Shown here: one piece after another, positions 17,567 through 63,326 of the stretch | Layout of the letters: the number at the start of each line of letters is the position of its first letter | Position numbering within the stretch: position 1 is the first letter of the stretch | Translations under genes and position numbers: made by a program | Notes under the pieces: model-generated | Seen by the model: the letters and a program-made list of their open reading frames with translations, nothing else | Database searches by the model: none | What the model was told of the DNA's origin: nothing | Source: Monocercomonoides exilis PA203 | Taxonomy: Eukaryota; Protista; Preaxostyla | Direction: 5' to 3' | Length of the DNA: 64,000 nt | NCBI GenBank assembly: GCA_001643675.2 | Contig: LSRY02000055.1 | Location: 248,001 to 312,000, forward strand

Positions 17567-19897
17567 TTATTGTCCAAGCATTTCAACTTTCAACTTTATA
17601 ATTCGAAACAAGTTTTTTGAATTATTCAATATCGTTTTCTTCTCATCTTTTTTTACCAATTTTTTGTCAAAGCAGTTGACTGAGTTTTTTTTAAAATTTG
17701 AGGTGCTAAATCGAAACAATGAAGATGAAAATATTGACAGCGAGGCAAGCTCAGAAAACAATTGTTTTGCAATATTCATATCTTTTATCTCCACACCAAC
17801 CATCGACAGCTGCGACAGCACCGCCACAAACACTGACGACGACATCACATCGTCTCCTGTTTTACTCGTGGTGATCACAACATCTTCCAATGAGAGTGAC
17901 CCACCCCCATCAGACACCACAGCCACATTCGGCGAAGGATTTATATTTGAGTTGCAGTCAACCTTCAAGTTGCTCATTCCAAGATGACCTGTTGACACAC
18001 TGAACAGCACTCCAGCTGATAAAAGGGCTCCAGTTCCAATCGAACTTGTTTCCCTTTCTTTCCCAATGACTGAAATTTTCTTTTCTCCAATATCAATTGT
18101 TGCTGTCTCACTTTTGTGATCCCCTTCCATCAGAGTGATTGTCAAGCTTATCTGCACCTCGCACATCTCGAAGGCCTTCTTCACTGTTTTGCACGGATTT
18201 GATTCATTTGACCCGCACGGCTCATATGAATCATTCCCACTCACTGAGACGTACATCGTCTTGTCTTTCAACCACCACTTCTTTTCTGTGTGCTGATATG
18301 TCCAACTCCCTGAACTCGACAAATTATATCCATAACATACTCTCTGCTCATCTGTATTCGTTGTGTAGCATTCATGAAATGGATTTCCTGAAGAATTAAA
18401 AAGATCATAGCGATCATAATACATCACATCATGCCCATATGAATTTGATCCAGTCATGCATTTACATTCATGGAAAAAAAGAAAATAACAATAGATTCCA
18501 TCACTTGGAGCTGTTGCTTGAACTGGATAAAACCAAAATCCTCCTCCTTCTCTTAATGCTGAACATGATATAAACTGAACGCTCCTCATTTTATATTTAG
18601 TAGGAACGAATTGACAAAGCATGCCTCCACCACCAGTATTTGTTATTGAGCATGAAGTGAAACAGCAGTCAAACACACACGCACTCTCCCCTTCTCCTAT
18701 TTCTTCTCCAATGCATCCTGTTTCGGAAACCTGAAAATTTTCGAGAAAAAGTCCTCCTCCATCATAACTTGCTTTGCAATTCTGGAATTCACATCCGCTG
18801 ATCCGAACACACGATGAAATCGTATAAACAAACATCCCTCCTCCAAAGCGATTTTGTCCTTCGCAAGAATTAAAAAAACTGTGCTCAATCTCAACCGAAC
18901 TGATTCCAAAACACATGACCCCTCCTCCAGCATAATGAGCATAGCAGTCATTGAATGAACAATGCGAAACTGAAAGTTCTCCAGAATTGAGATTGTACAT
19001 ACAGATTGCCCCTCCACTCGATACCCCGTCCGTAACGGAATCGCTTTCTCCTGTTGTCCTCGAGCCACTCCATTCGCACCAAGTGAATGTGTTTGCTCCA
19101 TTGAATGTTTCGTTTTGTCTGTCTGGCTTCAATGGCACCTCTGTTGTTCCTTCACATACAACATTTCTTGTCCTGCAACACCCAACGAATGATGTATTTG
19201 AGACAGATAATAAAGCCAATTGGTTGTTCAGAGAAGGGACAATCCCGCCATCATATGCGTCACAGACTGATGAAAATGAGCAGCTATTCATAAAACAAGA
19301 GGTTTGTGAAAATGTAGTTGTTGGAGGTGAACATGCATCATTTGTTGTTGAGATGTTGAAAAATGATAATTTGGAGAGGGATACAAGGGGTATTGAAGGT
19401 GAAGAAAGGAACGGGGCTGATGAGACACAAAAAGAAGAGAAGTGTGATTCGCTCACCGAAATGCTCCCTTCAATGCCTTCTCCATATCCATCTCCTTCTC
19501 TTCCTCTCCCCCTTCCTCTTTCTCCTCCTTCTCCTCCTTTTTCTTCACCTCCACCCTTCTCCTCTCCATATCCCTTCCCTCCAAACAGCCTTCCAGAGTA
19601 TATTTCTCCCCCTCTTCTCCACCCTTTCAATGTGATGTTTGTCAACACCCCAATGCTCCCACTCAGATCAAATGCCCCTGCACCATCATCCTTCCCCATC
19701 CCCACAACACACCCCCTCACCACAACCACGCTCCCTTTCCTTCCACACACTAAACAACAATTATCATCATTCTCCAATGAAATTTGATTTAACTCAACTG
19801 ATGCATTTTTAACCACTAAACTCCCTTTAAACACACTCACATCACTAACTGCTTCAACACATGACGCGATTCCCACAATGAACAACAAACTCAACAT
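17567..19897 (-). CDS. Cys-rich right-handed beta-helix (Pmp/pectin-lyase-like) surface protein, copy 1; signal peptide present, C-terminus apparently truncated
   Basis: 776-aa ORF with ATG and hydrophobic leader MLSLLFIVGIASCVEA. Repeated GGAI/GGG(V/M/L) plus CxFxxC turns, and YVSVSG.D...CG..SNPCKT. Confidence 0.8.
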   Translation of the reverse strand: MLSLLFIVGIASCVEAVSDVSVFKGSLVVKNASVELNQISLENDDNCCLVCGRKGSVVVVRGCVVGMGKDDGAGAFDLSGSIGVLTNITLKGWRRGGEIYSGRLFGGKGYGEEKGGGEEKGGEGGERGRGRGREGDGYGEGIEGSISVSESHFSSFCVSSAPFLSSPSIPLVSLSKLSFFNISTTNDACSPPTTTFSQTSCFMNSCSFSSVCDAYDGGIVPSLNNQLALLSVSNTSFVGCCRTRNVVCEGTTEVPLKPDRQNETFNGANTFTWCEWSGSRTTGESDSVTDGVSSGGAICMYNLNSGELSVSHCSFNDCYAHYAGGGVMCFGISSVEIEHSFFNSCEGQNRFGGGMFVYTISSCVRISGCEFQNCKASYDGGGLFLENFQVSETGCIGEEIGEGESACVFDCCFTSCSITNTGGGGMLCQFVPTKYKMRSVQFISCSALREGGGFWFYPVQATAPSDGIYCYFLFFHECKCMTGSNSYGHDVMYYDRYDLFNSSGNPFHECYTTNTDEQRVCYGYNLSSSGSWTYQHTEKKWWLKDKTMYVSVSGNDSYEPCGSNESNPCKTVKKAFEMCEVQISLTITLMEGDHKSETATIDIGEKKISVIGKERETSSIGTGALLSAGVLFSVSTGHLGMSNLKVDCNSNINPSPNVAVVSDGGGSLSLEDVVITTSKTGDDVMSSSVFVAVLSQLSMVGVEIKDMNIAKQLFSELASLSIFSSSLFRFSTSNFKKNSVNCFDKKLVKKDEKKTILNNSKNLFRIIKLKVEMLGQ

Positions 19898-20899
19898 CTC
19901 GTCAAATTTGTGTCAACCTCGCCAAATCAATATTCTTATTGTTCTTTTATCGCTTCCCCTCCCCCTTTTCAAAGCACCTTTTCCATTTTGCAAATCCCAC
20001 CTTTTCCATCCATTTTTTATATTTCCCTTTGCTCACTCATCCATTCCCATTCCATTTCCCACCTTCTGCCATCTTTCTCGTGATTGCCTCAAAATCCATC
20101 TTTCCTCATCCCTTGCGCTTTTATCCAATGAAGATATTCTTCCAAAAAGATCCTTATCCATATTTAAAAAAATATATTATAATATATTGATAAAATGTTA
20201 TTTCTTTTATATAAAAAAAACAATTTTTCAAACCTTGTATAATCTCCATTCTTCATTGTTTCTGTCTTTCTTCTTTCTTCTTTCTTCTTTCTTCTTTCTT
20301 CTTTCTCCTTCTCCAGATTATTTTTCCTTTCTGCAAACGCATCCATTTCCTCTATCTCATTCTTCCATCATTCAATCAACAGCTTTGCTTCTCTTCTGCT
20401 CCTCCAAAAATAAACATCCCATTTCCATTCTCCTGTTCTGCTTCCAGCTGAATGGCTCCTTCAACTTGTGCTTCCAAAAATAGGCGAGGACGACTGAGAA
20501 GAGGAAAAAGTTGAGAAGAAGAAGGAGATGATGATAATTGTTAAGAAAGGTAAAAAGAAGGAAAAAAATGAAACTGATAAAATTGAGAGAAGTAGATAAT
20601 GGCGAAGAAGGCGAAGAAGAATAAGAAGAGGAGGAGGAATAAGGCGAAGAAGGCGAAGAAGGAGAAGAAGGCTTGGAGGAAAATGAAGAAGAATATATGG
20701 AAGAAGAAGAGGAAGACAAATATGATTATGACCAAGAAGAGAAAAATTATATAAAATTTTAATTGTTGAGGAGATGCATTTGATAATAATGACGAAGAAG
20801 AATTCGATGAAGGAAATGAAGTAGATGAAGGGAATGAAGATGAAGAAGATGATGACGGCGATGATGCCGATGATAGAGATGAAGATGATAAAGATGGTG

Positions 20900-22560
20900 A
20901 ATCCGATGTTATTGTCAAGTTTGAATACTGTATATCTTCTGTCAGAAGATATCTTCAGCATCACTTCCTCGTTCTCTGCTTCAATGGATAACGTTTCAAT
21001 GATAGAAGGCTGAAGACAAAGGTTAAATGACTCAAATCCATTTTTGCCTGTAATCCACCCCAAGCTTCTTGTATCACACAGAACTGTCCGTTTTTCTCGT
21101 ATCTATGGTTCAAAAGCCAAGCAATGAATTCCAGTTCCATCGCTCCCCTCAGTCCTTAAAATCAATGTCTTGCCATTCCCACCCCAAGAAATGCGCCTTG
21201 TTCCGTCCCAACTGCTGCCAATCTCCTGTTTCAGTTATTTGCCCCAATCTCTCCAACAAGATTTTTTTGAAAATGACCCAGCCATCTTCAAAGGGTGCTA
21301 CCTTTTCATTGAATTTGGTTATTCGTCCTTTTAAACTTTGAATATCTTCCAACCCCGTTCATTTCTGCTCCATCAGAATTCATTTTTCATCGCATTTCAA
21401 TCCATCGCGCTTGTATAGTCCAAATAAAGTTGCATAAACATTTATGATAAAATACATTCAGGCTCTAATATATTTGAAAGATAACATTTGGCTCACTTCA
21501 TTGCTGTTCTGCTCTGCATGGAATAAATTGTCCATTTTTTATAAATCGTCTGAATCACGACTTTGGAGAGGATACGGATGATAACATCTTCACAACAAAT
21601 AGAACAATATAAAATACATACATTGAAAATTCTTCATTTCCATCGAAAATATTGTTGCTCCCCAGCCATTCATCAATCAAAACGCACAATTTCATCTTCC
21701 ATCAAAGAAATATCGTTTTTGTAGTATCCTCCTTTTCACTGGAAATATTTCATTTAGTCAACCTGCCTTTGTTTTCACTTCGGAGTCTCACTCCGTTGAC
21801 AGTTTCTGAGCATTTGACATTTCTTGATCATGTTCCATAACGAATTAGAGCCACAAAAGAAAAGGGGCACAACTCGATGTGTCGTTGCTGAATGGGAATA
21901 TGAAGACAATGCGATAACAAAGGGATGGATTTATGGAATGGGGTGATGGAGTTGAGCTTTTGGAGGAGGCAGAGTTTTGGAGGGGGAAAGGAGCGATAAA
22001 AGAATATTTATTGTGGAAAAGAGGTATTTTTGGGAGGTTTTATTGGGAAGATGGATGTGCGGAGGATGGATTGGGATGAGGTTTGGAGGGGTTGTTTTTT
22101 CGATTTTTGTGAGTTGGAAGGTGTTTAGGCAGTGTTAATTATTTGAGAAAAGGAATTTAATGTGGAGGAGGTGGGATAAGAGGGGGAAACAAGAAGGGCA
22201 GAAGATGGGTGGAGTGAATGGAATATATTTATTGGAGGGGAAGAGAGAGATGGAAAGGAAATGGAGAAGAAATGGAAAAGTGATTTTTTTTTTTTATGTA
22301 TCGAGAGAAGGAGAAGGCATATGGAGCAGGGCAAGAGGGAGAGTATTTGCGAGTGAGTGTTTGATAAGAAGGAAAAGTGGGGTTGAAGAAAAAAATGTAA
22401 GAGATATTTTTTTTATCTTTTTTTATTTTTTATTGAAAGGACAGTTTGGACGCGCCTCTCATTTGCGGGGCAAGGGATGGAGGTGGGGGCGGAGGAAGAC
22501 GGGAAGAAGGAACATCAGCGCTGGCGCTTTGAATTGGAGGTGTGAAGACAGAGGAAGATG
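20900..22560. repeat. Conserved spacer block between divergently oriented beta-helix copies, copy A; contains a decayed ORF on the - strand
   Basis: Homologous to ~35560-37200 (inverted), ~50400-52030 and ~58920-60550 (inverted). For example CACAACTCGATGTGTCGTTGCTGAATGGG and GGAAGAAGGAACATCAGCGCTGGCGCTTTG occur in all four. Confidence 0.9.
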
Positions 22561-23628
22561 AGGAGCTGATTATGGGAGGTGTTTTGCAATGGAAAGAGAC
22601 AGAAAAAGGATGGAGATATTTATATTTTTTTGGTTGGAAGAAGGGGAATGGGAGATGGGGAGACAGGGACTGTGATATTTGGCGTGGTGGTATTGTTGTT
22701 GTTTTGAGGGGAAATGGAGAGAAGAAGAGGGCAATACAGCGAAAAGGGATGGGAAGGGATTCTTCAGATGGAATCTTCTTCATTGCTTGTTTTTTTATTG
22801 AATGGAGTTTGCGGAGTTGTTTGAGAGGAAGCAGAACAGAGGATTGAGCTTTTGTTAATATTTTAAATAGAAGAAGAAAGAAAAAGTCAGCGAAAAGCGA
22901 TCATTGTGAAAGATATAGGTTTGCATTTTTTTAATTATAATTTTTCATATATTATTTTTTTATGAAACTAGGATTTTTGCAAGAATGTTCAACGAAAACG
23001 AATGAACAAGGAATATGTCAAGAGGGGATGTTGGATGCATTAAAAGAAATCCGGAGATAAGAATTGGAGGGGAGTAATGAGAAATGAGCTGGATGAAATA
23101 TCAAGGAAAAGAGAAGAAGATATTTTTTTATGAATTTTTTTGAAATTTTTCTTTCTTATTGAAGGCATCCTGGACATATGTTATAAAATGAAAAGGGAGA
23201 GAGAGAGTGGAAAAATAGATGATACAGCAGCAGAGGCAGAAGAAGAAGAAGAAGCGGAAGAAGAAGCGGAAGGAGAAGAAGAAGATGAAGATGAAGAAGA
23301 AGCGGAAGGAGAAGAAGCGGAAGAAGAAGAGCGGAAGAAGCGGAAGATTGTGAAAGGATACAGGTTAGATTATTCATATTATTCATATTTTTTTATATTT
23401 TTTTTCTTAATTTTTTTAAATAATGAAAGTTTTCTTGCGTGCATATTCAACAGGAATGGATGGGAATGGAATAAGATTAGGAGGCAGACAATGCCCATCC
23501 AAAAAAGAGATTATTGGGAAAGCGTTCCAATCAGAAGGGGTAGAAGAAATAGAAAAATGTGAATTCAAGCTCAATGCATAGCGCAAAGAGGCGTAGGGAA
23601 GGGGGAGAATGAATAGGAAGAATTCTCT

Positions 23629-25119
23629 TTGAGAAAATCACACTTTTCCTCTTTTTTCCAATTTTTCTCATCGCCTTCAATACCCCTTGTATCCCTCTCC
23701 AAACTCACATTTTTCAACGTCTCAACAGCAAATGAGGCATGCTCACCTTCAACCACTACGTCAACTCAAACATCATGTTTTATGAGTAGTTGTTCATTTT
23801 CATCGGTCTGTGATGTGTATGATGGAGGTATTGTTCCTTCACTCAATAATCCCTATGCCTCCTTAACAGCCTCGAACACCTCGTTTGTTGGGTGTTGTCG
23901 GACAAGAAATGTTGAATGCATTGGAACTGCAGATAGAAAGTTGACTCCAGGGAGGCAAAACACAACAGATAATGGAGCAAACTCATTCACTTGGTGCGAG
24001 TGGAACGGATCGAAGGCTAATGGAAGCAAAGATGATTATGCTGATGATGCTTCCAATGGTGGAGCAATTCGAATGTACAATCTCAATTCAGGAGAACTGA
24101 CAGTTTCGCATTGTTCATTCAACGACTGCTATGCTCATTATGCTGGAGGAGGGGTCATGTGTTTTGGAATCAGTTCGGTTGAGATTGAGCACAGTTTTTT
24201 TAATTCTTGCGAAGGACAAAATCGCTTTGGAGGAGGGATGTTTGTTTATACGATTTCATCGTGTGTTCGGATCAGCGGATGTGAATTCCAGAATTGCAAA
24301 GCAAGTTATGATGGAGGAGGACTTTTTCTCGAAAATTTTCAGGTTTCAGGAACAGGATGCATTGAAGCAGAAAATGAAGGAGGGGAGAGTGCGTGTGTGT
24401 TTGACTGCAGTTTCACTTTATGTTCAATAACTGGCATATGGGGCGGAGGCATGTTTTGCAAAAATGTTCCCAATCAATTCAAGATAAGAAGCGTCAGCTT
24501 TATTTCGTGTAATGCATCGACCAGGGGAGGTGGATTTCATTTGGAGCCAATAAAGCAAACTTTGCCAGCTGATGGGCTTTATTGCTATTTCCTCTTCTTC
24601 CATGGGTGCAAATGCTTGGGTAATCCTCCACATGGGCACGACATGATATACTTGGATAATTACAATTTATATTTTAATTCTTCAGGAAATCCGTTCCATG
24701 AATGTTACACCACAAACACAGATGGCCAGAGAGTATGTTATGGATATGATTATTCGAGTTCAGGGAGTTGGAAATATCAGCACACAGAAAAGTGGGATTG
24801 GCTGAAGGACAAGACGATTTATGTGTCAGTGAGTGGAAATGATACAATTCCACTTTGTGGGGCGAATGAATCAAATCCGTGTCTGACAGTGAAGAAAGCG
24901 TTTGAGATGTGTGAGGTGCAGATTAGCTTGACAATCACGCTGCTGGAAGGGGATCACAAAAGTGAGACAGCAACAATTGATATTGGAGAAAAGAAAATTT
25001 CAGTCATTGGGAAAGAAAGGGAAACAAGTTCGATTGGAACAGGAGCACTTTCATCATCATCTTCTTCCTTCTCATCTTCCTCTGCTTATTATTTCTCCTT
25101 CTCGACATTTTTTATTTAA
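23629..25119 (+). pseudogene. Beta-helix surface protein copy 2: open core cassette lacking ATG and signal peptide, ending at TGALSSSS
   Basis: 496 open codons from a TTG. Homology to copy 1 starts at SHFSS..SSPSIPL. The upstream sequence is decayed. Confidence 0.7.
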
Positions 25120-26383
25120 AAAAATGTTCTCCAATCGCTTCAGTTCACTTCGTGTGAACATAAAATCAGCAAACGGCTTCAAATCTATTTTTCTGCTTTT
25201 ATTGGTTTTTGGAAGCAGATACTTGAGATTACGAAGAACTTGGAGCAGAAAGACAGAATCAGAGCATTTGTTGATGCTGCTAATTGTGAAGGCATTGCCA
25301 AATTCATAATTATTATCACCAACTTTATCATCAATAATTTTTTTTTCAGAAAATATAAACCTTCATTGCCATCTTTTTCATTTTCTTCCGACTCTTTGTC
25401 ATTATCATTGTAGTCTTCTTCCTCTTCCTCTTCTTCGTTTTTCTCGTCTATGCATTAGCTTCTAGTTGTAGGAGTTAATTGAGTGGAAGCAGAACTGAAG
25501 ATTTTTTAAAGGGGTGGTTTTTGAGGTCAAAGGGAAGCGGTACCATTGGCAATGGGACATACAGCAGAGATGGGGCAGACGGGCTTGCAAATGGGAAGCG
25601 ACGATATTTTGAGAGGCACAAGAGAAAGAAATAGAAGAAAGTCTGTGAAAGGTGAAATAATAAGAGGCATGAATTTATATTTTTGCTTATTATTATTATT
25701 ATTATTATTATATAATTATAATCTTTGCAAAAATGCTTTCAGCCAATTCGCACACATGAGATGAGGAAAGATGGGTTTTGAATCGGGCCTGGAAAGATTG
25801 CAGAAGGTGGGAAATGAAGAACAAACAGAGAATAATCCAGATGAAATATATGAAAAGAATGGAAAAGATGAAGTTTGCGAGATGGAAATGGCATTTTGAG
25901 AGAAGGAGGGGAAGAGGCAGAAGAGAGAGCGGAAAGCTGATGAGATGACTAAAGAAGATATCTAACAGAAAATCAAGAAGAATGAAGAATGAAGAATGAA
26001 GAATAGAAGAAGAAGAAGAAGAAGAAGATTTCGAAAAGAAAATGATACTGATTTTTCAAGTTTTTAATATAAAAATTTTTTAATATTACATTTTTGAATT
26101 TAAAAAATTATTAAAAATTTTGTTTTTATAAATATATATTTTTAAAATGATAATAGGGACTTTTGCACAAACATTCAAAAGGAATGGATGAGAATGGAAT
26201 ATGGAAAAAAAAGGCAGAAGTTAACAACAGCCAAAAATGGATATGAGTTCAGCATGCATGTCAGAAGCTGTGGAAGAGATTGAAAAAGAGATTTGGACTT
26301 TTTCGTGAATATTGCGACATTGTGCGTGCATTCAAGACAAGCACATTGCAAATGGGAAAAGGAAAAAGGAAGAATTTTCTTAG

Positions 26384-28027
26384 AGAGAATCGCATTTCTC
26401 ATCTTCAACGGCATTTCGCTCGTCACATTCCATTCCCCTTATATCCCTCTCCAAACTCACATTTTTCAATATTTCAACAGCAAATGATGCATGTTCACCT
26501 TCAACCACTGCGTCAGCCCAAACCTCATGTTTTATTAACAGTTGCTCATTCTCATCAGTCTGTGATGTGTATGATGGCGGAATTGTTCCCTCTCTGAACA
26601 ATCCCTTGGCCTCTTTAACTGCCTCAAACACATCATTCATTGGGTGTTGTCGAACAAGGAATGTTGTATGTGAAGGAAATGCAGATAGAAAGTTGACTCC
26701 AGAGAGGCAAAACACAACAGCCAATGGAACAAATACATTCACTTGGTGCGAATGGGATGGATCGAAAACAACAGGAGAAAGTGACTCGTGGGCTGATGGA
26801 ATGTCAAGCGGAGGGGCCATCTGCATGTACAGTCAATCGTCGGCCGCTGTGTCTGTTTCGCATTGTGCATTCAATGAATGTGTTGCGTATTGGTGCGGTG
26901 GAGGTATTAGTTGCTACAATATTAAATCAGTTGAGATTGTGAACAACACCTTCGATTCATGCGTTGCACAAAATTATTTGGGAGGAGGGGCATTCGTTTA
27001 TACGATTTCAACATGTGCTCGGGTCAGCGGATGTGAATTCCAGAATTGTCAGGCACACCACGATGGAGGAGGTCTTCATCTTAATAATTTTCAGGTTTCA
27101 GAAGGATGCATTCCAACAGAAAATGGAGAAGGGGAGAGTGCGTGTGTGTTTGACTGCAGTTTCGCTTCGTGTTCACTTGCAAGCACAGGCGGTGGAGGCA
27201 TGTATTGTGCAAATATTCCAATCACACAATTCAAAATGAGGAGCATTCAGTTTATTTCATGTTCAGCATCGTCATATGGAGGAGGATTGTATCTTTATCC
27301 ATATAGACAGACATCACAAAATGATGTAATTTATTGTTATTTTTTGTTCTTCCATGAATGCAAATGCTCTGCAGCCACTCCATATGGGCGTGATGTGATG
27401 TATTATGATTACTACAGTGTATATTTATCTCAAAATAATCCGTTCTATGAATGTTACACCACAAGCACAGATGAGAAGAGAATGTGCTATGCCTACAACT
27501 ACTCAAATACAAATGCTTGGACATTTCAGCACACAGAAAAGAAGGATTGGTTGAAAGACAAGACGATATATGTTTCGGTGAATGGAAATGATACATCTCC
27601 GCTTTGTGGGGCAAATGAAACAAATCCGTGTCTGACAGTGAATAAAGCGTTTGAGATGTGTGAGGTGCAGATTAGCTTGACAATCACGCTGCTGGAAGGG
27701 GATCACAAAAGCGAGACAGCAACAATTGATATTGGAGAAAAGAAAATTTCAGTCATTGGGAAAGAAAGGGAAACAAGTTCGATTGGAACAGGAGCCCTTT
27801 TATCAGCTGGAGCGCTGTTTAGTGTGTCAACAGGTCATCTGGGTTTATTACACATAAAGGTTGACTGCAACTCAAATGCAAATCCTTCTTCGCCGAGTGT
27901 GGTTGTGGTGTCTGATGGAAGTGGGTCACTCTCGTTGGAGTACGTTATTATGTATTTATTGTCATTTTTTATTTTTTTCATGTTTGATAATGAAAATAAA
28001 GCAAATATAAATGTGGTAGTTTTTTAA
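26384..28027 (+). pseudogene. Beta-helix surface protein copy 3: open core cassette, no signal peptide
   Basis: Frame is open from after TAG 26381-83 (RESHFSS...) to 28027. Same motifs as the other copies. The preceding ttttcttag could alternatively be a splice acceptor. Confidence 0.7.
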
Positions 28028-28803: not shown

Positions 28804-29638
28804 TGGGTGATTGTTTTTGAAATCATAACTTTCATACCGGGGTGTGGCCATTGACATTTCATCTTTTGACATGAACATTGTTATTGAAACCAAGTTGATC
28901 GAAACATAGAATTTCCATCTTCAGTGAACAATCAAAAGCCAAAAAATGACAATCAACTTCATATTTTTTTCTGCCCACCTTTGTTATCAAACAAATTCGA
29001 ACCATCAAAATCAATTTTCACTGAGACTTCCTGATTGGAAAACAATGAATTTGAAAAGGATGAAACATCCAAAGGAGTTCAAATTATATTTCAATGATTG
29101 AAATTTTAGAAGAGAGCTCATGGATCTTTGATTATGTTTTTTATTCTATTGATTTTTTAAATGCAATAACAACAGAGCATTCAAAAGTGAAATTCCTCCA
29201 TCATCCAACACTCTTATTTTTGAAACATGATGAAAGAAATTATTATCCATACCAATTTCATTTTTATCGAAATCATTAATTGCATTAAAAATCAAAAAAC
29301 ATAATCACATCAATAATCAGTGAATTCCCTTCAAAAATTTCAATCATTGAAACTTAATTTGAACTTCTTCGGATGTTTCATCCTTTTCAAATTCATTGTT
29401 TTCCAATCAGGAAGTCTCAGTGAAAATTGATTTTGATTGTTTGAGTTTGTTTGATAACAAAGGTGAGCAGAAAAAAATATGAAGTTGATTGTCATTTTTT
29501 TGGCTTTTGATTGTTCACCAAAGTCGGAAATTCAATGTTCTGATCAACTTGGTTTCAATAACAATGTTCATGTCAAAGGATGAAATGTCAATGACCACAC
29601 CCCTGTATGAAAGTTATGATTTCAAAAACAATCACCCA
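28804..29638. mobile_element. ~835-bp imperfect foldback element forming the centre of palindrome P1
   Basis: Bounded by TGGGTGATTGTTTTTGAAATCATA on both sides (inverted). Arm mismatches start at 28838/29604 and increase toward the centre. Confidence 0.5.
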
Positions 29639-30417: not shown

Positions 30418-32061
30418 TTAAAAAACTACCACATTTATATTTGCTTTATTTTCATTATCAAACATGAAAAAAATAAAAAATGACAATAAATACATAATAA
30501 CGTACTCCAACGAGAGTGACCCACTTCCATCAGACACCACAACCACACTCGGCGAAGAAGGATTTGCATTTGAGTTGCAGTCAACCTTTATGTGTAATAA
30601 ACCCAGATGACCTGTTGACACACTAAACAGCGCTCCAGCTGATAAAAGGGCTCCTGTTCCAATCGAACTTGTTTCCCTTTCTTTCCCAATGACTGAAATT
30701 TTCTTTTCTCCAATATCAATTGTTGCTGTCTCGCTTTTGTGATTCCCTTCCAGCAGTGTGATTGCCAAGCTAATCTGCACCTCACACATCTCAAACGCTT
30801 TATTCACTGTCAGACACGGATTTGTTTCATTTGCCCCACAAAGCGGAGATGTATCATTTCCATTCACCGAAACATATATCGTCTTGTCTTTCAACCAATC
30901 CTTCTTTTCTGTGTGCTGAAATGTCCAAGCATTTGTATTTGAGTAGTTGTAGGCATAGCACATTCTCTTCTCATCTGTGCTTGTGGTGTAACATTCATAG
31001 AACGGATTATTTTGAGATAAATATACACTGTAGTAATCATAATACATCACATCACGCCCATATGGAGTGGCTGCAGAGCATTTGCATTCATGGAAGAACA
31101 AAAAATAACAATAAATTACATCATTTTGTGATGTCTGTCTATATGGATAAAGATACAATCCTCCTCCATATGACGATGCTGAACATGAAATAAACTGAAT
31201 GCTCCTCATTTTGAATTGTGTGATTGGAATATTTGCACAATACATGCCTCCACCGCCTGTGCTTGCAAGTGAACACGAAGCGAAACTGCAGTCAAACACA
31301 CACGCACTCTCCCCTTCTCCATTTTCTGTTGGAATGCATCCTTCTGAAACCTGAAAATTATTAAGATGAAGACCTCCTCCATCGTGGTGTGCCTGACAAT
31401 TCTGGAATTCACATCCGCTGACCCGAGCACATGTTGAAATCGTATAAACGAATGCCCCTCCTCCCAAATAATTTTGTGCAACGCATGAATCGAAGGTGTT
31501 GTTCACAATCTCAACTGATTTAATATTGTAGCAACTAATACCTCCACCGCACCAATACGCAACACATTCATTGAATGCACAATGCGAAACAGACACAGCG
31601 GCCGACGATTGACTGTACATGCAGATGGCCCCTCCGCTTGACATTCCATCAGCCCACGAGTCACTTTCTCCTGTTGTTTTCGATCCATCCCATTCGCACC
31701 AAGTGAATGTATTTGTTCCATTGGCTGTTGTGTTTTGCCTCTCTGGAGTCAACTTTCTATCTGCATTTCCTTCACATACAACATTCCTTGTTCGACAACA
31801 CCCAATGAATGATGTGTTTGAGGCAGTTAAAGAGGCCAAGGGATTGTTCAGAGAGGGAACAATTCCGCCATCATACACATCACAGACTGATGAGAATGAG
31901 CAACTGTTAATAAAACATGAGGTTTGGGCTGACGCAGTGGTTGAAGGTGAACATGCATCATTTGCTGTTGAAATATTGAAAAATGTGAGTTTGGAGAGGG
32001 ATATAAGGGGAATGGAATGTGACGAGCGAAATGCCGTTGAAGATGAGAAATGCGATTCTCT
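30418..32061 (-). pseudogene. Beta-helix surface protein copy 4 (mirror of copy 3)
   Basis: Translation identical to copy 3 except SLAITLLEGNH vs SLTITLLEGDH. Confidence 0.7.
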
Positions 32062-47631: not shown

Positions 47632-49091
47632 TCATGATGAAAATGATGAGGAAGAAGATGATGATGAAAGTGCTCCTGTTCCAATCAAACTCTCCGTCCT
47701 TTCTTTCCCAATGACTGAAATCTTCTTTTCTCCAATATCAATCGTTGTTGTCTCGCTTATGTGATCCCCTTCCAGCAGCGTGACTGACAGGCTCACCTGG
47801 ATCACGCTCTTTTCAACTGCAACACCGATGGTTCGGCATGCACTTGACTCATCCAATCCACACAGATCGTCTTCGCCACCACCACTCACTGCCACAAATC
47901 GATTGAGAATCCCTCTCTTCAGCCAATCCCACTTTTCTGTGTGATAGAACGACCAACCCTTGGAATCCGTATAATCATATCCGTAGCACACTCTCTTCTC
48001 ATCTGCATTTGTGGTGTAACATTCATAGAACGGATTATTAGAAGATAAAAAGACACTGTAGTGATCATGATACATTACATCATGGCCGTAAGATGGGTTG
48101 TTAGAACATTTGCACTCGTGGAAAAAAAGGAAATAACAATAGATTCCATCATCGGGTGCGGTTTGTCTGTATGGATACAATCTCATTCCTCCACCATATG
48201 CAGTTGCAGAGCAAGAAATGAACTGAATGCTCCTCATTTTGAATGCAGCTGGAACAGTAGCGCAATACATGCCTCCACCAAAATTATTTGTAACCGAACA
48301 TGATGTGAAACAGCAGTCAAACACGCACGCACTCTCTCCTCCCTCATTTTCTGTTGGAATGCATCCTGTTCCTGAAACATTAAAATTATCAAGATAAAGT
48401 CCTCCTCCATAATTAACTGCTTTGCAATCCTTGAATTCACATCCGCTGATCCGAACACACGATGAAATCGTCAAAATGAACATTCCACCCCTCGATAACT
48501 TTGCGCAGTGCATGAATCAAATGTGTTATTCACAATCTCAACAGACTTAATATTGTAGCAATTTATTCCGCCGCCTGCATAATGAGCATAGCAGTTGCTG
48601 AAAGTGCAATGAGAAACAGACACAGAGGCAGATGATTGACTGAACATGCAGATAGCCCCGCCACTCGATTTTCCATCTGAAACAGAATCATTTTCTCCTG
48701 TTGTTCTCGAACCATCCCATTCACACCAAGTGAATGTATTAGCTCCGTTGAATGTTTCATTCTGTCTCCCAGGAGTCAACTTTCTATCTGCAGTTCCAAT
48801 GCATTCAACGTTTCTTGTCCGACAACACCCAACGAATGATGTATTTGAAACAGACAAAGAGGCATAGGGATTGTTGAGGGAATGAACAATCCCACCATCA
48901 TACATATCGCAAACTGATGAAAAGGAGCAACTGCTCATCGGACATGTGGTTTGGGTTGACATAGTCGTTAAAGGCAAACATGCCTCATTTGCTGTTGAGG
49001 TGTTGAAAAATGTCAGATGTGAGAGGGATATTAGGGGAATGGAAGGCGATGAGAAAAATTGGAAAAAATAGGAAAAGTGTGATTCGCTCAC
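47632..49091 (-). pseudogene. Beta-helix surface protein copy 8 (mirror of copy 11); 1-nt homopolymer frameshift near 48490
   Basis: ORFs 48471-49091 and 47632-48513 together equal 61866-63326. C4 here vs G5 at 62466-70. Confidence 0.7.
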
Positions 49092-49984
49092 TGAAACACT
49101 TCCTTCTGTGCATCCTTCTCTTTCCCTTGCCTCTTAGCACCATGCCAAAAAATATCTCAATATAGTTGTATCATTTTTTCTGCTTCTTCTTCCCCTTCTG
49201 ATCATCATGGCTTCCACACATCTCTTTTTTTCCTTCTGTTTCCGTTTTCTTCCTTCTTTCCATATTCCATTCGCATTCATCCCTTTTGAATATTCATGCA
49301 AAAGTCCCTGTCATCATTGAAAATAAAAATATAAAAAATACATAAAATTGATATTAAAAATATCACAAACCAGTACCTTTTTCTTTTTGCATTCTTCTTC
49401 CTTTTCTTCATCTTCATTTCCATCTTGACTTCCTGTCACATTTCTTCTTCAGCCATTTCCTCAATTTTCCGATTACTCTTTTCCGTCGCTTCCCCTTCTT
49501 CTTTTTCAAATCGCTGCACAAATCTTCAAAGGTCTCCTCTTCCATTCATTTCAGTTAACACCTCTGGCTCATTCTTCAATATTCTCAAATTTTTTGTCAT
49601 TGCCTGATTTCTCAAAAGCATCCAACGTGCTCTTTTTCCCATGTTCATTCGTTGCCTGAAAGCATCCTTCCATAAATCTTAATCCCTCAAAAAAATAAAA
49701 AAAATAAATATGTGAAAAATTTGAGAAAAAAAAATAATATAAAACAAACTCTAAAAATATATTTATTGCCAATCTTCACACACTTTCTTCTTCTTCTTGA
49801 GCCTCTCAAATTATTGTTCTTTTCTGCCAACAAAACTCGCCTTTTTTGCTTCTGCTGCCTGTTTCATTGCCAATGAAATCGATTCTGTTCTGCTTCCAAA
49901 AACTAGCTCACTTCCAATCCTCGGAACTGCACTCATCGGAATATCCTCTTTTATTCGAATCTTTCGAAAAGGCGGAGAAGGTGG

Positions 49985-50072
49985 AGAAGACGAAGAAGAT
50001 AAAGAAGAAGAAGAAGAAGAAGAAGAAGAAGAAGAAGAAGAAAAAGAAGAAAAAGAAGAAGAAGAAGAAGAA

Positions 50073-50111
<39 letters not shown>

Positions 50112-50230
50112 GATGAAGATGAAGAAGAATAAGAATAAGAAGAAGAATAAGAAGAAGAAGATGATGAAGGAGATGAAGGCGAAGAAGACGAGGAAGGCGA
50201 TGAAGGAGATGAAGGCGAAGAAGATAAAGA
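49985..50230 (+). repeat. (GAA)n/(GAT)n compound trinucleotide repeat, polypurine-biased
   Basis: Direct reading; mirrored at ~60725-60975 with one extra unit. Confidence 0.9.
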
Positions 50231-50399
50231 CGAATATGATAATGGACAAGTAGGATGAAATTTATGTAATTTCATTTGTCAAGGAGGTGCATATGAAAAA
50301 AATGATGGAGAAGAATTCGATGATAGCAATGAAGTAGATGAAGGAGATGAAGATGAGGATGAAGAAGGAGAAGAAGGCGAAGATGGAGAAGAAGGTAAA

Positions 50400-52803: not shown

Positions 52804-54414
52804 GTGGGTCAAGCTCCATTCCTCTCATCAATCTTCATTCCCCTTGTTTCCTTCTCCAAACTCACATTTTTCAATATCTCCACAGCATTTTCAGATTGCC
52901 CATCTCCAGCAACTACATTATCCCAAATATCGTGTTTTCTGAACAGTTGCTCCTTTTCATCAGTTTGTGATGCGTATGATGGCGGGATTGTTCATTCCCT
53001 CAACAATCCCTATGCCTCTTTGTCTGTTTCAAATACATCATTCACTGGATGTTATCGAACAAGGAATGTTGAATGCAATGGAACTGCAGATAATAAGCTA
53101 ACTCCAGGGAGACAAAATGAAACATTCAATGGAGCAAATTCATTTATTTGGTGCGAATGGAATGGGTCGAATACAACAGGAACAGAAAATACATCCGCTG
53201 ATGTTGCTTCAAATGGAGGGGCCATCTGCATGTATGGCCAATCAAGCGCATCGGCTTCAATTAAGCACTGCTCATTCAATGATTGCAATGCTTATTGGGA
53301 TGGAGGGGGAGTCATGTGTGCAAATATTAAATCGGTTGAAATTGAAAACAATACGTTCAACTCTTGTTCCACAAAAACTAATGGCGGAGGAGGAATGTGC
53401 ATTTATGCAATTTCATCGTGTGTTCTGATCAGTGGGTGCGAATTCCAGAATTGTGAAGCAGATCGTGCTGGAGGAGGACTTTATCTTGAAAATTTTAATA
53501 TTTCAGGATCTGGATGCATAGGTGAAGAAGATGGAGAAGGAGGGAGCTCGTGTGTGTTTGACTGCAGTTTCACTTCATGCTCAATCACAAATTCATATGG
53601 TGGAGGCATGTTTTGTAAAACTGTTCCTGAGACACAATTCAAAATGAGGAGCATTCAGTTCATTTCATGCAATGCATCATCATATGGAGGAGGATTTCAT
53701 TTAAATCCGAACAGACAAACAACCCCAAATGATAGAATCTATTGCTATTTTTTGTTCTTCCACGAATGCAAATGCTCAGCCAATCCTCCACGCGGACATG
53801 ATATTGCATATGCAGATTATTACAAACATTTTTTGGATTCTGGAAATCCGTTCAACGAGTGCTATACTACAAATGCTGATGATCGGAGATTATTTTATGA
53901 ACATTACAATGGAAGTAATTGGATTGGTCAACATATAGAAAAGAAGTGGTGGTTGAAAGACAAGACGATATATGTTTCGGTGAATGGAAATGATACATCT
54001 CCGCTTTGTGGGGCAAATGAAACAAATCCGTGTCTGACAGTGAAGAAGGCGTTTGATATGTGTGAGGTGCAGATTAGCTTGACAATCACTCTGATGGAAG
54101 GGGATCATCAAAGCGAGGCAACAACTATTGAGATTGGGACAAAGAAGATTTCGGTCATTGGGAAAGGGAGGACGGAAAGTTCGATTGGAATAGGAGCACT
54201 TTCATCGGTAGGAGCGCTGTTCAGCGTGACGACAGGAAACCTTGGCTTATTGCACATGAAGGTTGACTGCAACTCAAATATAAATTATTCGCCGAGTGTG
54301 GTTGTGGTATCTTATAGAAGCGGATCATTTTCACTTGAGTCAAGAAGCGAATTGGGCAAATCGGAAATGGAGAAATATTTATTAATTTTATTAAAATTTC
54401 TTTTTGCTCTTTAA
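52804..54414 (+). pseudogene. Beta-helix surface protein copy 9: open core cassette, no signal peptide
   Basis: 536 open codons from a GTG. Same frameshifting deletion after SVS(E/G)S as copies 5, 7 and 10. Confidence 0.7.
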
Positions 54415-55001: not shown

Positions 55002-55959
55002 TATTATAAATTGATGTTTTTCTTATTTTCACCTCAGAAACTATAAAATTTTTACGAAAAAATATCTTTTCTTTTGTCATTCAATAAATATGGTGAAAAA
55101 TACGGACTTTCAAGCTTTTTATGCACAAGGCATGAAAAAATTGTTTCATTTATTACATTTTGAAACTCAACCAGATTTCAAATTTATTTGATTTTCATAT
55201 TTGAAAGCAAACGCCATTGATATAATAACATCATGTTGTGTGACATCACATGTATTTCAAAAAACAAACTCATTTTTTTCAAATTTTTTGATCACAAAAA
55301 GATCATCTTTGATACATAATTTTTCAATGAAAATGCCTAAAGTCAAATATTTTGTCCCATATGTTGTTTTTTTTGAAATGTCGAAATTGTTTGATTTTCA
55401 AATAATATTGAAATTCAGTATTTTAATCTTGTACTTGTTTGGATACATGACACTCCACCATCATGGAATTTATCGATTGATGATTCAATAAAATCCTTTC
55501 TTGTGTATGTTCATAAGCGGAAATTATTATTTGATAAAAATATTGAATTTCAATATTATTTGAAAATCAAACAATTTCGACATTTCAAAAAAAACAACAT
55601 ATGGGACAAAATATTTGACTTTAGGCATTTTCATTGAAAAATTATGTATCAAAGATGATCTTTTTGTGATCAAAAAATTTGAAAAAAATGAGTTTGTTTT
55701 TTGAAATACATGTGATGTCACACAACATGATGTTATTATATCAATGGCGTTTGCTTTCAAATATGAAAATCAAATAAATTTGAAATCTGGTTGAGTTTCA
55801 AAATGTAATAAATGAAACAATTTTTTCATGCCTTGTGCATAAAAAGCTTGAAAGTCCGTATTTTTCACCATATTTATTGAATGACAAAAGAAAAGATATT
55901 TTTTCGTAAAAATTTTATAGTTTCTGAGGTGAAAATAAGAAAAACATCAATTTATAATA

Positions 55960-56547: not shown

Positions 56548-58157
56548 TTAAAGAGCAAAAAGAAATTTTAATAAAATTAATAAATATTTCTCCATTTCCG
56601 ATTTGCCCAATTCGCTTCTTGACTCAAGTGAAAATGATCCGCTTCTATAAGATACCACAACCACACTCGGCGAATAATTTATATTTGAGTTGCAGTCAAC
56701 CTTCATGTGCAATAAGCCAAGGTTTCCTGTCGTCACGCTGAACAGCGCTCCTACCGATGAAAGTGCTCCTATTCCAATCGAACTTTCCGTCCTCCCTTTC
56801 CCAATGACCGAAATCTTCTTTGTCCCAATCTCAATAGTTGTTGCCTCGCTTTGATGATCCCCTTCCATCAGAGTGATTGTCAAGCTAATCTGCACCTCAC
56901 ACATATCAAACGCCTTCTTCACTGTCAGACACGGATTTGTTTCATTTGCCCCACAAAGCGGAGATGTATCATTTCCATTCACCGAAACATATATCGTCTT
57001 GTCTTTCAACCACCACTTCTTTTCTATATGTTGACCAATCCAATTACTTCCATTGTAATGTTCATAAAATAATCTCCGATCATCAGCATTTGTAGTATAG
57101 CACTCGTTGAACGGATTTCCAGAATCCAAAAAATGTTTGTAATAATCTGCATATGCAATATCATGTCCGCGTGGAGGATTGGCTGAGCATTTGCATTCGT
57201 GGAAGAACAAAAATAGCAATAGATTCTATCATTTGGGGTTGTTTGTCTGTTCGGATTTAAATGAAATCCTCCTCCATATGATGATGCATTGCATGAAATG
57301 AACTGAATGCTCCTCATTTTGAATTGTGTCTCAGGAACAGTTTTACAAAACATGCCTCCACCATATGAATTTGTGATTGAGCATGAAGTGAAACTGCAGT
57401 CAAACACACACGAGCTCCCTCCTTCTCCATCTTCTTCACCTATGCATCCAGATCCTGAAATATTAAAATTTTCAAGATAAAGTCCTCCTCCAGCACGATC
57501 TGCTTCACAATTCTGGAATTCGCACCCACTGATCAGAACACACGATGAAATTGCATAAATGCACATTCCTCCTCCGCCATTAGTTTTTGTGGAACAAGAG
57601 TTGAACGTATTGTTTTCAATTTCAACCGATTTAATATTTGCACACATGACTCCCCCTCCATCCCAATAAGCATTGCAATCATTGAATGAGCAGTGCTTAA
57701 TTGAAGCCGATGCGCTTGATTGGCCATACATGCAGATGGCCCCTCCATTTGAAGCAACATCAGCGGATGTATTTTCTGTTCCTGTTGTATTCGACCCATT
57801 CCATTCGCACCAAATAAATGAATTTGCTCCATTGAATGTTTCATTTTGTCTCCCTGGAGTTAGCTTATTATCTGCAGTTCCATTGCATTCAACATTCCTT
57901 GTTCGATAACATCCAGTGAATGATGTATTTGAAACAGACAAAGAGGCATAGGGATTGTTGAGGGAATGAACAATCCCGCCATCATACGCATCACAAACTG
58001 ATGAAAAGGAGCAACTGTTCAGAAAACACGATATTTGGGATAATGTAGTTGCTGGAGATGGGCAATCTGAAAATGCTGTGGAGATATTGAAAAATGTGAG
58101 TTTGGAGAAGGAAACAAGGGGAATGAAGATTGATGAGAGGAATGGAGCTTGACCCAC
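56548..58157 (-). pseudogene. Beta-helix surface protein copy 10 (mirror of copy 9); 1-nt homopolymer frameshift near 57210
   Basis: ORFs 57024-58157 and 56548-57219 together equal 52804-54414. A5 here vs T6 at ~53748. Confidence 0.7.
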
Positions 58158-60550: not shown

Positions 60551-60724
60551 CCTTCTTTACCTTCTTCTCCATCTTCGCCTTCTTCTCCTTCTTCATCCTC
60601 ATCTTCATCTCCTTCATCTACTTCATTGCTATCATCGAATTCTTCTCCATCATTTTTTTCATATGCACCTCCTTGACAAATGAAATTACATAAATTTCAT
60701 CCTACTTGTCCATTATCATATTCG

Positions 60725-60843
60725 TCTTTATCTTCTTCGCCTTCATCTCCTTCATCGCCTTCCTCGTCTTCTTCGCCTTCATCTCCTTCATCATCTTCTT
60801 CTTCTTATTCTTCTTCTTATTCTTATTCTTCTTCATCTTCATC

Positions 60844-60882
<39 letters not shown>

Positions 60883-60975
60883 TTCTTCTTCTTCTTCTTC
60901 TTTTTCTTCTTTTTCTTCTTCTTCTTCTTCTTCTTCTTCTTCTTCTTCTTCTTCTTTATCTTCTTCGTCTTCTCC
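60725..60975 (-). repeat. (TTC)n/(ATC)n compound repeat, mirror of 49985-50230
   Basis: Direct reading. Confidence 0.9.
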
Positions 60976-61865
60976 ACCTTCTCCGCCTTTTCGAAAGATT
61001 CGAATAAAAGAGGATATTCCGATGAGTGCAGTTCCGAGGATTGGAAGTGAGCTAGTTTTTGGAAGCAGAACAGAATCGATTTCATTGGCAATGAAACAGG
61101 CAGCAGAAGCAAAAAAGGCGAGTTTTGTTGGCAGAAAAGAACAATAATTTGAGAGGCTCAAGAAGAAGAAGAAAGTGTGTGAAGATTGGCAATAAATATA
61201 TTTTTAGAGTTTGTTTTATATTATTTTTTTTTCTCAAATTTTTCACATATTTATTTTTTTTATTTTTTTGAGGGATTAAGATTTATGGAAGGATGCTTTC
61301 AGGCAACGAATGAACATGGGAAAAAGAGCACGTTGGATGCTTTTGAGAAATCAGGCAATGACAAAAAATTTGAGAATATTGAAGAATGAGCCAGAGGTGT
61401 TAACTGAAATGAATGGAAGAGGAGACCTTTGAAGATTTGTGCAGCGATTTGAAAAAGAAGAAGGGGAAGCGACGGAAAAGAGTAATCGGAAAATTGAGGA
61501 AATGGCTGAAGAAGAAATGTGACAGGAAGTCAAGATGGAAATGAAGATGAAGAAAAGGAAGAAGAATGCAAAAAGAAAAAGGTACTGGTTTGTGATATTT
61601 TTAATATCAATTTTATGTATTTTTATATTTTTATTTTCAATGATGACAGGGACTTTTGCATGAATATTCAAAAGGGATGAATGCGAATGGAATATGGAAA
61701 GAAGGAAGAAAACGGAAACAGAAGGAAAAAAAAGAGATGTGTGGAAGCCATGATGATCAGAAGGGGAAGAAGAAGCAGAAAAAATGATACAACTATATTG
61801 AGATATTTTTGGCATGGTGCTAAGAGGCAAGGGAAAGAGAAGGATGCACAGAAGGAAGTGTTTCA

Positions 61866-63326
61866 GTGAGCGAATCACACTTTTCCTATTTTTTCCAATT
61901 TTTCTCATCGCCTTCCATTCCCCTAATATCCCTCTCACATCTGACATTTTTCAACACCTCAACAGCAAATGAGGCATGTTTGCCTTTAACGACTATGTCA
62001 ACCCAAACCACATGTCCGATGAGCAGTTGCTCCTTTTCATCAGTTTGCGATATGTATGATGGTGGGATTGTTCATTCCCTCAACAATCCCTATGCCTCTT
62101 TGTCTGTTTCAAATACATCATTCGTTGGGTGTTGTCGGACAAGAAACGTTGAATGCATTGGAACTGCAGATAGAAAGTTGACTCCTGGGAGACAGAATGA
62201 AACATTCAACGGAGCTAATACATTCACTTGGTGTGAATGGGATGGTTCGAGAACAACAGGAGAAAATGATTCTGTTTCAGATGGAAAATCGAGTGGCGGG
62301 GCTATCTGCATGTTCAGTCAATCATCTGCCTCTGTGTCTGTTTCTCATTGCACTTTCAGCAACTGCTATGCTCATTATGCAGGCGGCGGAATAAATTGCT
62401 ACAATATTAAGTCTGTTGAGATTGTGAATAACACATTTGATTCATGCACTGCGCAAAGTTATCGAGGGGGTGGAATGTTCATTTTGACGATTTCATCGTG
62501 TGTTCGGATCAGCGGATGTGAATTCAAGGATTGCAAAGCAGTTAATTATGGAGGAGGACTTTATCTTGATAATTTTAATGTTTCAGGAACAGGATGCATT
62601 CCAACAGAAAATGAGGGAGGAGAGAGTGCGTGCGTGTTTGACTGCTGTTTCACATCATGTTCGGTTACAAATAATTTTGGTGGAGGCATGTATTGCGCTA
62701 CTGTTCCAGCTGCATTCAAAATGAGGAGCATTCAGTTCATTTCTTGCTCTGCAACTGCATATGGTGGAGGAATGAGATTGTATCCATACAGACAAACCGC
62801 ACCCGATGATGGAATCTATTGTTATTTCCTTTTTTTCCACGAGTGCAAATGTTCTAACAACCCATCTTACGGCCATGATGTAATGTATCATGATCACTAC
62901 AGTGTCTTTTTATCTTCTAATAATCCGTTCTATGAATGTTACACCACAAATGCAGATGAGAAGAGAGTGTGCTACGGATATGATTATACGGATTCCAAGG
63001 GTTGGTCGTTCTATCACACAGAAAAGTGGGATTGGCTGAAGAGAGGGATTCTCAATCGATTTGTGGCAGTGAGTGGTGGTGGCGAAGACGATCTGTGTGG
63101 ATTGGATGAGTCAAGTGCATGCCGAACCATCGGTGTTGCAGTTGAAAAGAGCGTGATCCAGGTGAGCCTGTCAGTCACGCTGCTGGAAGGGGATCACATA
63201 AGCGAGACAACAACGATTGATATTGGAGAAAAGAAGATTTCAGTCATTGGGAAAGAAAGGACGGAGAGTTTGATTGGAACAGGAGCACTTTCATCATCAT
63301 CTTCTTCCTCATCATTTTCATCATGA
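61866..63326 (+). pseudogene. Beta-helix surface protein copy 11: open core cassette, no signal peptide, ending at TGALSSSS
   Basis: 486 open codons from a GTG (VSESHFS..). A decayed homologue of the G/E-rich linker lies upstream. Confidence 0.7.

Follow-up and report, generated by a model that had tools for sequence, protein, structure and literature searches.

Organisation of the locus

The window analysed here is the whole of a 64,000-nucleotide (nt) stretch in the middle of contig C53 (C53:248001-312000) of the Monocercomonoides exilis assembly (82.3 Mb in 101 contigs). It carries eleven open reading frames (ORFs) which are truncated N-terminal parts, or heads, of giant receptor-like proteins encoded elsewhere in the same genome. 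In the assembled sequence these are organised by two nested giant palindromes, and the copies are patchworks attributable to gene conversion. A reading made from the sequence alone (the sequence-only reading) had taken the DNA for that of a protist. This is borne out: the DNA is AT-rich and eukaryotic, a genome search places it on C53, and the best 120 of 121 protein matches to the window ORFs are all M. exilis entries named 'uncharacterized protein MONOS_*'. That reading had also counted eleven copies. All eleven were recovered in place as real ORFs, but only six are independent sequences, the other five being mirror copies within the palindromes.

The first palindrome, P1, has its axis at ~29221 (centre 28947-29495) and its arms reach ~17.5 kb and ~40 kb. 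A1 (17567-19897, minus strand), A2 (23629-25119, plus strand) and A3 (26384-28027, plus strand) are mirrored across the axis by A3m (30418-32061, minus strand), A2m (33323-34795, minus strand) and A1m (38048-39991, plus strand). A1 is the most complete in layout: its 776 amino acids (aa) comprise an ATG, a signal-peptide-like N-terminus, an N-domain, a low-complexity G/E/R linker and a beta-helix core, and it is truncated without a transmembrane (TM) segment. A1m has the same signal-peptide start and a core that is largely replaced (synonymous divergence, dS, 0.8 to A1). A2 is a start-less head ending in IGTGAL and then poly-Ser; A3, also start-less, is a 547-codon stop-to-stop frame that ends after GSLSLE. 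The arms are 100% identical in their inner part (over 2.4 kb), 97% in the middle and 84-91% in the outer part, with corresponding values for the head pairs A3/A3m (99-100%), A2/A2m (97%) and A1/A1m (84-91%).

The second palindrome, P2, has its axis at ~55480, with only 8 nt (55477-55484) between the arms. Here B1 (47632-49091, minus strand) and B2 (52804-54414, plus strand), a start-less head that ends after a GSFSLE-type motif, are mirrored by B2m (56548-58157, minus strand) and B1m (61866-63326, plus strand). Both pairs are ~100% identical and arm segments 95-100% identical. The remaining start-less head, L (45070-46650, minus strand), is mirrored at 100% just beyond the right end of the window; since this mirror lies at C53:312305-313886, the P2 arms extend at least 10.4 kb on each side and L falls within their outer parts. 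The two frames that were noticed to be broken each differ from an intact mirror by a one-base homopolymer slip, C4 against C5 at ~48489 in B1 (whose remainder is identical to B1m) and T5 against T6 at ~57210 in B2m.

Within the palindromes the heads are arranged tail-to-tail and head-to-head. The window palindromes belong to an array of ~320 kb, with comparable arrays on two other contigs, and mirror pairs 4-6 kb apart recur at at least 15 places on the three contigs. The perfect inner arms, and frame breaks at homopolymer slips of the kind typical of nanopore data (PMC8767320), would also be expected if the mirror copies were fold-back artefacts of nanopore assembly. Against such an artefact, the window lies well inside its contig, the arms outside their inner part are 84-97% identical and diverged in discrete, replaced blocks, and A2 holds arm-specific sequence found nowhere else in the genome. 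Because of this blockwise divergence, the unique A2 sequence and the recurrence of mirror pairs, we regard the palindromes as real on the strength of the assembled sequence. One DNA run (X1) shows, over window positions 19400-25400, one-base 'left out' variants in minority contigs (e.g. at 25108 and 25118), which could be paralogue differences or residual assembly errors.

Truncated heads of a family of giant receptor-like proteins

The window copies correspond to the first domain, predicted to be a right-handed beta-helix (residues ~215-840), of giant single-exon receptor-like proteins of ~3000 aa, to whose frames of 2900-3100 aa they are linked by tblastn and HMMER matches at 54-80% identity. 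From the N-terminus onwards the giants consist of a signal peptide, a beta-helix ectodomain of great length, a single TM segment and, on the cytoplasmic side, a kinase-like domain in which only the C-lobe is recognisable. Full-length, TM-anchored members, for which the sequence-only reading had proposed a search elsewhere in the genome, thus exist. Each of the six examined is a single uninterrupted frame of 2900-3100 aa with one strongly hydrophobic segment at ~aa 2600-2740, and most have a signal-peptide-like start. Giant tails match PF07714 over the C-lobe only (profile positions ~157-257; 29-46 bits against a cut-off of 23.1), and neither the glycine loop (GxGxxG) nor the HRD and DFG motifs are visible in the two cytoplasmic tails that were read. 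Judged by these motifs, the giants may be pseudokinases. The largest family described in M. exilis comprises 332 'protein tyrosine kinases', 320 of them TKL (PMC6759080), and this 'largest kinase family' may largely consist of pseudokinases.

The truncation is genuine. The six complete giants match the window only through residues ~50/213-846, and residues beyond ~846, including the TM and kinase regions, have no match anywhere in the window. Likewise, annotated long paralogues searched by tblastn with their N-terminal and C-terminal portions match nothing in the window outside the cores. As had been noticed, all copies terminate soon after IGTGAL or GSLSLE, A1 continuing for ~100 codons further. 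At the other end, the absence of a leader from nine of the eleven copies holds: an ATG followed by a hydrophobic, signal-peptide-like N-terminus occurs only in A1 and A1m. In the other nine, which open at GTG or TTG in the ORF list, a stop in the same frame closely precedes the first conserved residues (the SESHFSS/SQAPFLSS region), and out-of-frame remnants of the family's G/E/R-rich linker lie upstream.

Could these be ordinary multi-exon genes whose leader and C-terminus are supplied by splicing? M. exilis is intron-rich (PMC6759080), and such exons had been named as the finding that would overturn the idea of truncated cassettes. No leader or anchor exon was found by homology or in the RNA contigs, either upstream or downstream, and none of the contigs joins A2 to another exon. 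The giants themselves are encoded without interruption. Moreover, the convergent pairs A3/A3m and B2/B2m lie tail-to-tail only 2.1-2.4 kb apart, so that there is no room for exons encoding the missing ~2200 residues. Ordinary multi-exon genes are therefore rejected, and the copies are truly truncated heads, lacking everything downstream and, in nine of eleven, the leader. Taken as one alternative, undetected splicing or assembly fold-back appears to us highly improbable.

The same two forms are found across the genome. A census with one core gave 2134 first-look candidates, of which those scored form two classes. Open frames of ~500-800 aa make up the short class, which numbers at least 120 heads, often as plus/minus pairs; most lie on three contigs, in C80:1.15-1.83 Mb, in C53:197-517 kb and on C71. 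The frames of the long class, of 2700-3100 aa, are dispersed, and at least 60 intact ones of at least 2500 aa are spread over many contigs. The segment that follows the head in the giants occurs at at least 86 genomic places, ~60 of them within frames of at least 2500 aa; C53 and C80 together have only three, each situated at an array edge or close to one. A signal-peptide-like start is present in ~18 of 26 long heads and in 3-4 of 48 short ones, and some short copies (A3, B2 and L034) lack any Met ahead of the core. Monophyly of the short copies, by which a single truncation could have been dated, was rejected, since the core tree mixes the two classes: at least 10 changes of class are forced and parsimony gives 18, compared to 21 when labels are shuffled.

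The public gene models P0018 and P0088, which cover window copies L and B1/B1m, start at an internal Met of truncated heads, and many of the more than 100 family gene models of 430-600 aa probably do so too. Repeats make up ~46% of the M. exilis assembly (37.8 of 82.3 Mb) and are mostly 'unclassified' (PMC8767320). In the literature searched, we found no paper describing head-only arrays, palindromes or conversion in M. exilis.

Predicted fold and sequence variability of the heads

The sequence-only reading had proposed a beta-helix surface protein with conserved anchors alternating with hypervariable loops. A1 was modelled with AlphaFold2 from a 50-sequence alignment, and the model is confident (predicted local distance difference test, pLDDT) at 85-97 over residues 245-545 and at ~80 in the small N-domain. 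VIA-align matches 230-255 residues of it to phage tailspikes, polysaccharide lyases, epimerases and adhesins, with Z scores of 17-18 and root-mean-square deviations of 3-4 Å; these proteins share only 6-12% sequence identity with the window copies. The language-model neighbours of the heads are DUF1565, Chlam_PMP and Beta_helix clusters, and the copies carry the turn motifs GGAI and GGG. No window copy has a significant Pfam match (the Beta_helix and Chlam_PMP thresholds are not reached), PF13229 matches only a later part of one giant, and a Foldseek search of the Protein Data Bank with the whole 776-aa model returned only weak rows (E of at least 0.02). The predicted fold, a right-handed parallel beta-helix, is thus confirmed at the level of the model.

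The conserved anchors also stand up, the named motifs being invariant or at least 90% conserved in the 50-sequence alignment. Blocks of 10 residues alternate between conserved (entropy 0.4-0.7) and variable (1.3-1.8). The term 'hypervariable loops' finds no support, since variable positions are not enriched outside predicted strands (p = 0.58).

RNA contigs over the array

Four RNA-library runs, from one study, and four DNA runs cover parts of the window. The A2 ORF, the leader region of A1-type copies and a portion of a spacer are represented among the RNA contigs; the interval 21.8-23.6 kb, just upstream of A2, is nearly empty in RNA and present in DNA. One RNA contig of 114 nt is identical to A2 over 23734-23847, a segment unique in the genome, so that one or more of the start-less copies would seem not to be strictly silent. 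In the leader region, one contig variant matches A1m where A1m differs from A1, two of these sites being shared with a close paralogue; A1's own allele is absent from the RNA contigs at its 5' end, and the other contigs of this region fit neither A1 nor A1m. A joint with the form of an 81-nt GT..AG intron (20152-20232, minus strand), located 5' of the A1 ATG, is seen in three of the RNA runs and is missing from the DNA run, although its shorter side is only 22 nt. All frames between this joint and the ATG contain stops, and it is probably an intron of the 5' leader (5' untranslated region) of A1-type transcripts.

These observations bear on the possibility that the short copies are expressed independently as proteins, A1 and A1m as secreted soluble heads (decoys, lectins or adhesins) and the others from an internal Met or from undetected leader exons. 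The ATG and signal-peptide-like start of A1 and A1m, the RNA on A1m-type leader alleles with its intron-like joint, the exact contig on A2, the two public models that treat window copies as genes and the protein-level constraint described below all fit such a view. On the other hand, 44 of the 48 sampled short copies have no signal peptide, and for A3, B2 and L034 even an internal start before the core is not available. Folding of a cysteine-rich ectodomain in the cytosol is unlikely. A2 is joined to no other exon and lacks RNA just upstream, the A1 allele is missing among the 5'-end contigs, and contig data do not quantify expression. We therefore consider independent expression an improbable explanation for the array as a whole.

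The head-to-head spacer between A1 and A2 (19898-23628) is 80-88% homologous to those at 35.5-37.2 kb, 50.0-52.4 kb and 58.6-61.0 kb. Conservation of this order between units (80-88% for 20.5-22.8 kb against 50.0-52.4 kb) coincides in part with RNA contigs. The head-to-head spacers of P2 contain mirror-image ORFs of 154-155 aa (49811-50275, minus strand; 60680-61147, plus strand) whose products have a long Ser-rich stretch and a conserved tail at the C-terminus. To the left of the array lies an ORF of 916 aa (6771-9521, plus strand) with sub-threshold Pfam matches only.

Mosaicism and gene conversion

The copies had been described as mosaics belonging to a candidate system based on gene conversion, and their mosaicism through conversion is supported. 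In 120-nt windows, the best partner of each window copy switches every 100-300 nt, with local identities of 90-100% against 70-80% overall. The pairwise homoplasy index (PHI) gives z = -22, and none of 500 permutations was as low. A GENECONV-type test identified 76 Bonferroni-significant tracts of perfect identity in which window copies take part, and 16 of these pair a short copy with a long one; examples among the 76 are tracts of 224 nt (A1 with A2), 260 nt (A1m with a copy at a distance of 90 kb) and 159 nt (B1m with a copy on C38). Inside tracts synonymous divergence falls to 0.00-0.06 (A1-A2m), or to 0.10-0.24 for the tracts between short copies and giants (A2-L013, B1m-L006 and copy L-L001), compared to 0.5-0.8 outside. 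Because synonymous divergence falls in this way, the tracts reflect exchange and not conservation.

Sister and mirror copies reveal the relative rates. They differ almost only blockwise: at alignment codons 3-92 for A2/A2m, to which their differences are confined, at 14-187 for L039/L045 and mostly at 276-440 for L027/L032. The A2/A2m block indicates an ectopic conversion tract, and since such pairs differ almost only in one block, conversion is faster than point mutation. Private substitutions amount to ~0.3% per site. Taken together, the comparisons show patchworks made by frequent conversion in short tracts of ~50-500 nt, which connects the two arms of a palindrome as well as array copies on separate contigs and, more rarely, array copies and giants.

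Open frames and selective constraint

Nine of the eleven window copies have no start, and the frames are nonetheless open. Excluding mirrors, window copies differ at 16-30% of nucleotides (dS 0.5-1.2) and retain frames of ~410 codons with a ratio of nonsynonymous to synonymous differences per site (pN/pS) of 0.24-0.36. That such divergent copies stay open with such ratios is beyond chance. Genome-wide, ~95% of scored short frames are free of stops, and median pN/pS (26 long and 47 short heads) is 0.39 between short copies, 0.40 between long ones and 0.40 between short and long. The sequence-only reading had claimed that the core stays open and had allowed that neutral decay of the core, equal to that of the flanks, would speak against it. 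The cores are selectively constrained, much as in the giants, and not decaying. A direct core-to-flank comparison at the nucleotide level rests on noisy global alignments, from which nothing emerges beyond a greater density of gaps in the flanks. Among private substitutions N/S is ~1.2-1.5 in both classes (Fisher p = 0.49).

Is this constraint merely borrowed from the giants? Genome-wide searches with A3 suggest a longer residence in the short pool. For a 146-aa segment the first 28 non-self matches are all short frames, at 76-87% identity against 75-76% for the best giant, and for a hypervariable 50-aa window there is no giant relative above ~75% in the genome. This window was thus not recently copied from an extant giant, and the short pool holds, and has kept open, segments that are absent from extant giants. 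Outside the arrays, an open fragment of 180 aa (C24:746748-746900) is 94% identical to the 50-aa window, which otherwise has no relative above 77%.

Exchange with the giants and its interpretation

In variable regions, 19 pairs of a short and a long copy have 120-nt windows at least 95% identical, some 99-100%. The direction of exchange may be approached through the other carriers of each allele. For tracts in the intact giants L001 (on C14), L005 (on C8) and L006 (on C80) these are all short copies, which points to transfer from short to long. For the tract of B1m, ~150-240 nt that are 97% identical to giant L006, the remaining carriers are giants, which points to the opposite direction. Such allele distributions leave the direction a matter of parsimony in both cases.

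The sequence-only reading had proposed a donor archive, with silent start-less cassettes feeding an expressed surface protein as in Borrelia vlsE or the trypanosome variant surface glycoprotein (VSG). Truncated copies and TM-anchored giants do have tracts in common, and a donor reservoir feeding receptors is plausible. Conversion, however, is family-wide, and its direction, so far as parsimony tells, goes both ways. The notion of a single expression site has to be abandoned: the at least 60 intact paralogues of ~3000 aa lie on many contigs and no distinguished acceptor was seen. Programmed single-site switching of the vlsE or VSG type, or antigenic variation by clonal switching, thus finds no support.

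On balance we lean towards a reading in which six truncated heads and their five mirrors form conversion-shuffled arrays that serve as a diffuse reservoir diversifying the giant receptors. Arm-to-arm conversion would keep the mirror copies identical, and ectopic conversion would shuffle segments among copies. The arrays would then hold a stock of pre-tested head segments, diversifying the membrane-distal tip of many receptors; we speak of a reservoir because exchange with the giants seems to be bidirectional. Selection, acting either through use of this reservoir or through the few leader-bearing and possibly secreted copies, would keep the start-less frames open. Many donors would serve many recipients, unlike the single-expression-site switch of vlsE or VSG. 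A more specific form of this reading, to which we give only tentative credence, is that leaderless and anchorless germline cassettes in self-correcting palindromes are conversion templates re-assorting the ligand-facing tips of dozens of giant receptor pseudokinases, and that selection through that use keeps the cassettes open.

Several points weigh against the reservoir reading. The direction of transfer is judged by parsimony from a sample of about one in four members of either class, and most short-long tracts are old (pS ~0.1-0.2), the freshest exchange being between short copies. Significant giant-giant tracts occur in 49 of 324 pairs downstream of the head, compared to 22 of 325 in the head; since giants exchange tracts in regions outside the coverage of the arrays, the arrays are not needed for diversification. 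For private substitutions alone pN/pS is ~1 or more in short and long classes alike and does not discriminate between them. Furthermore, the comparisons are within one genome rather than across clones or strains, the palindromes rest on the assembled contig rather than on spanning reads, and the runs compared (three RNA, one DNA) are assembled contigs only, in which expression cannot be ranked.

A rival reading is that of a functionless by-product, in which palindromic or segmental amplification multiplied 5' fragments into ampliconic pseudogene arrays, whose frames are kept open passively by repeated overwriting through conversion, both among the fragments and from full-length paralogues under selection. 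Conversion far outpaces point mutation, mirror and sister pairs differing by imported blocks against the low level of private substitution; pN/pS is equal in the short and long classes, as expected of one circulating pool; conversion is not specific to the head; and the B1m tract resembles an import from long to short. Stops are present in ~5-7% of short copies, and published 'unclassified repeats' overlap the M. exilis kinase family (PMC8767320). What speaks against passive maintenance is that the nearest relatives of short copies are overwhelmingly short, that the hypervariable window of A3, with its lack of close giant relatives, implies long residence in a pool which is nevertheless almost entirely free of stops, and that several tracts in intact giants fall in allele families otherwise confined to short copies. 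We consider this explanation a real possibility but a rather doubtful one.

Part of the M. exilis repeat fraction consists of ordered palindromic arrays of receptor-head fragments, which have stayed protein-like and trade sequence with the complete receptor genes. M. exilis, a gut protist, is the model eukaryote without mitochondria. If the arrays feed the receptors, they would add a new example of templated conversion for a surface-receptor repertoire, outside pathogens and vertebrate immunity, and would offer a tractable case of palindromes and ectopic conversion preserving start-less coding sequence. If they do not, they stand as a warning for annotation, in which truncated fragments have been modelled as genes from an internal Met.

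Comparison with known systems

The window copies are related to the TKL-type family of M. exilis through the N-proximal ectodomain of frames which end in a PF07714 C-lobe, and differ from it in having neither TM segment nor kinase. In predicted fold (Z 17-18) and in their GGAI and GGG turns they resemble tailspikes, pectate and alginate lyases and the Chlamydia Pmp-type GGA(I/L/V) proteins. Unlike members of known beta-helix families, they reach no significant Pfam score and share only 6-12% identity with these structures, and no catalytic function is implied.

Primate sex chromosomes carry ampliconic palindromes with multi-kb arms, tiny spacers and multi-copy genes, and arm-to-arm conversion is the usual explanation for the identity of their arms. 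Long inverted arms, a short spacer (8 nt in P2) and near-identity of the arms are shared by the M. exilis structures. In contrast, the M. exilis palindromes carry fragments of genes, are both nested and serial, and have blocks in single arms repeatedly overwritten by ectopic conversion.

Borrelia vls, Anaplasma msp2, Neisseria pilS and Trypanosoma brucei VSG have one or few expression sites and switch during infection. Start-less, in-frame, truncated copies clustered in arrays and segmental mosaics are common to these systems and to the window. One difference lies in the recipients, since in M. exilis the intact paralogues (at least 60) coexist.

A further parallel is with the chicken immunoglobulin pseudo-V genes. 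These are arrays of truncated V-like copies without leader or promoter, present in both orientations and largely open, and they donate short conversion patches to one rearranged acceptor in a process that is somatic, unidirectional and driven by activation-induced deaminase (AID). M. exilis likewise has arrays of truncated open copies in both orientations and short-patch conversion. Unlike the chicken, it has dozens of intact germline acceptors, and exchange is apparently bidirectional. M. exilis is regarded as a commensal (PMC6759080). As part of the same template reading, and by analogy, pseudo-V-like diversification of a whole receptor repertoire in a commensal protist may be entertained, as a possibility on the unlikely side.

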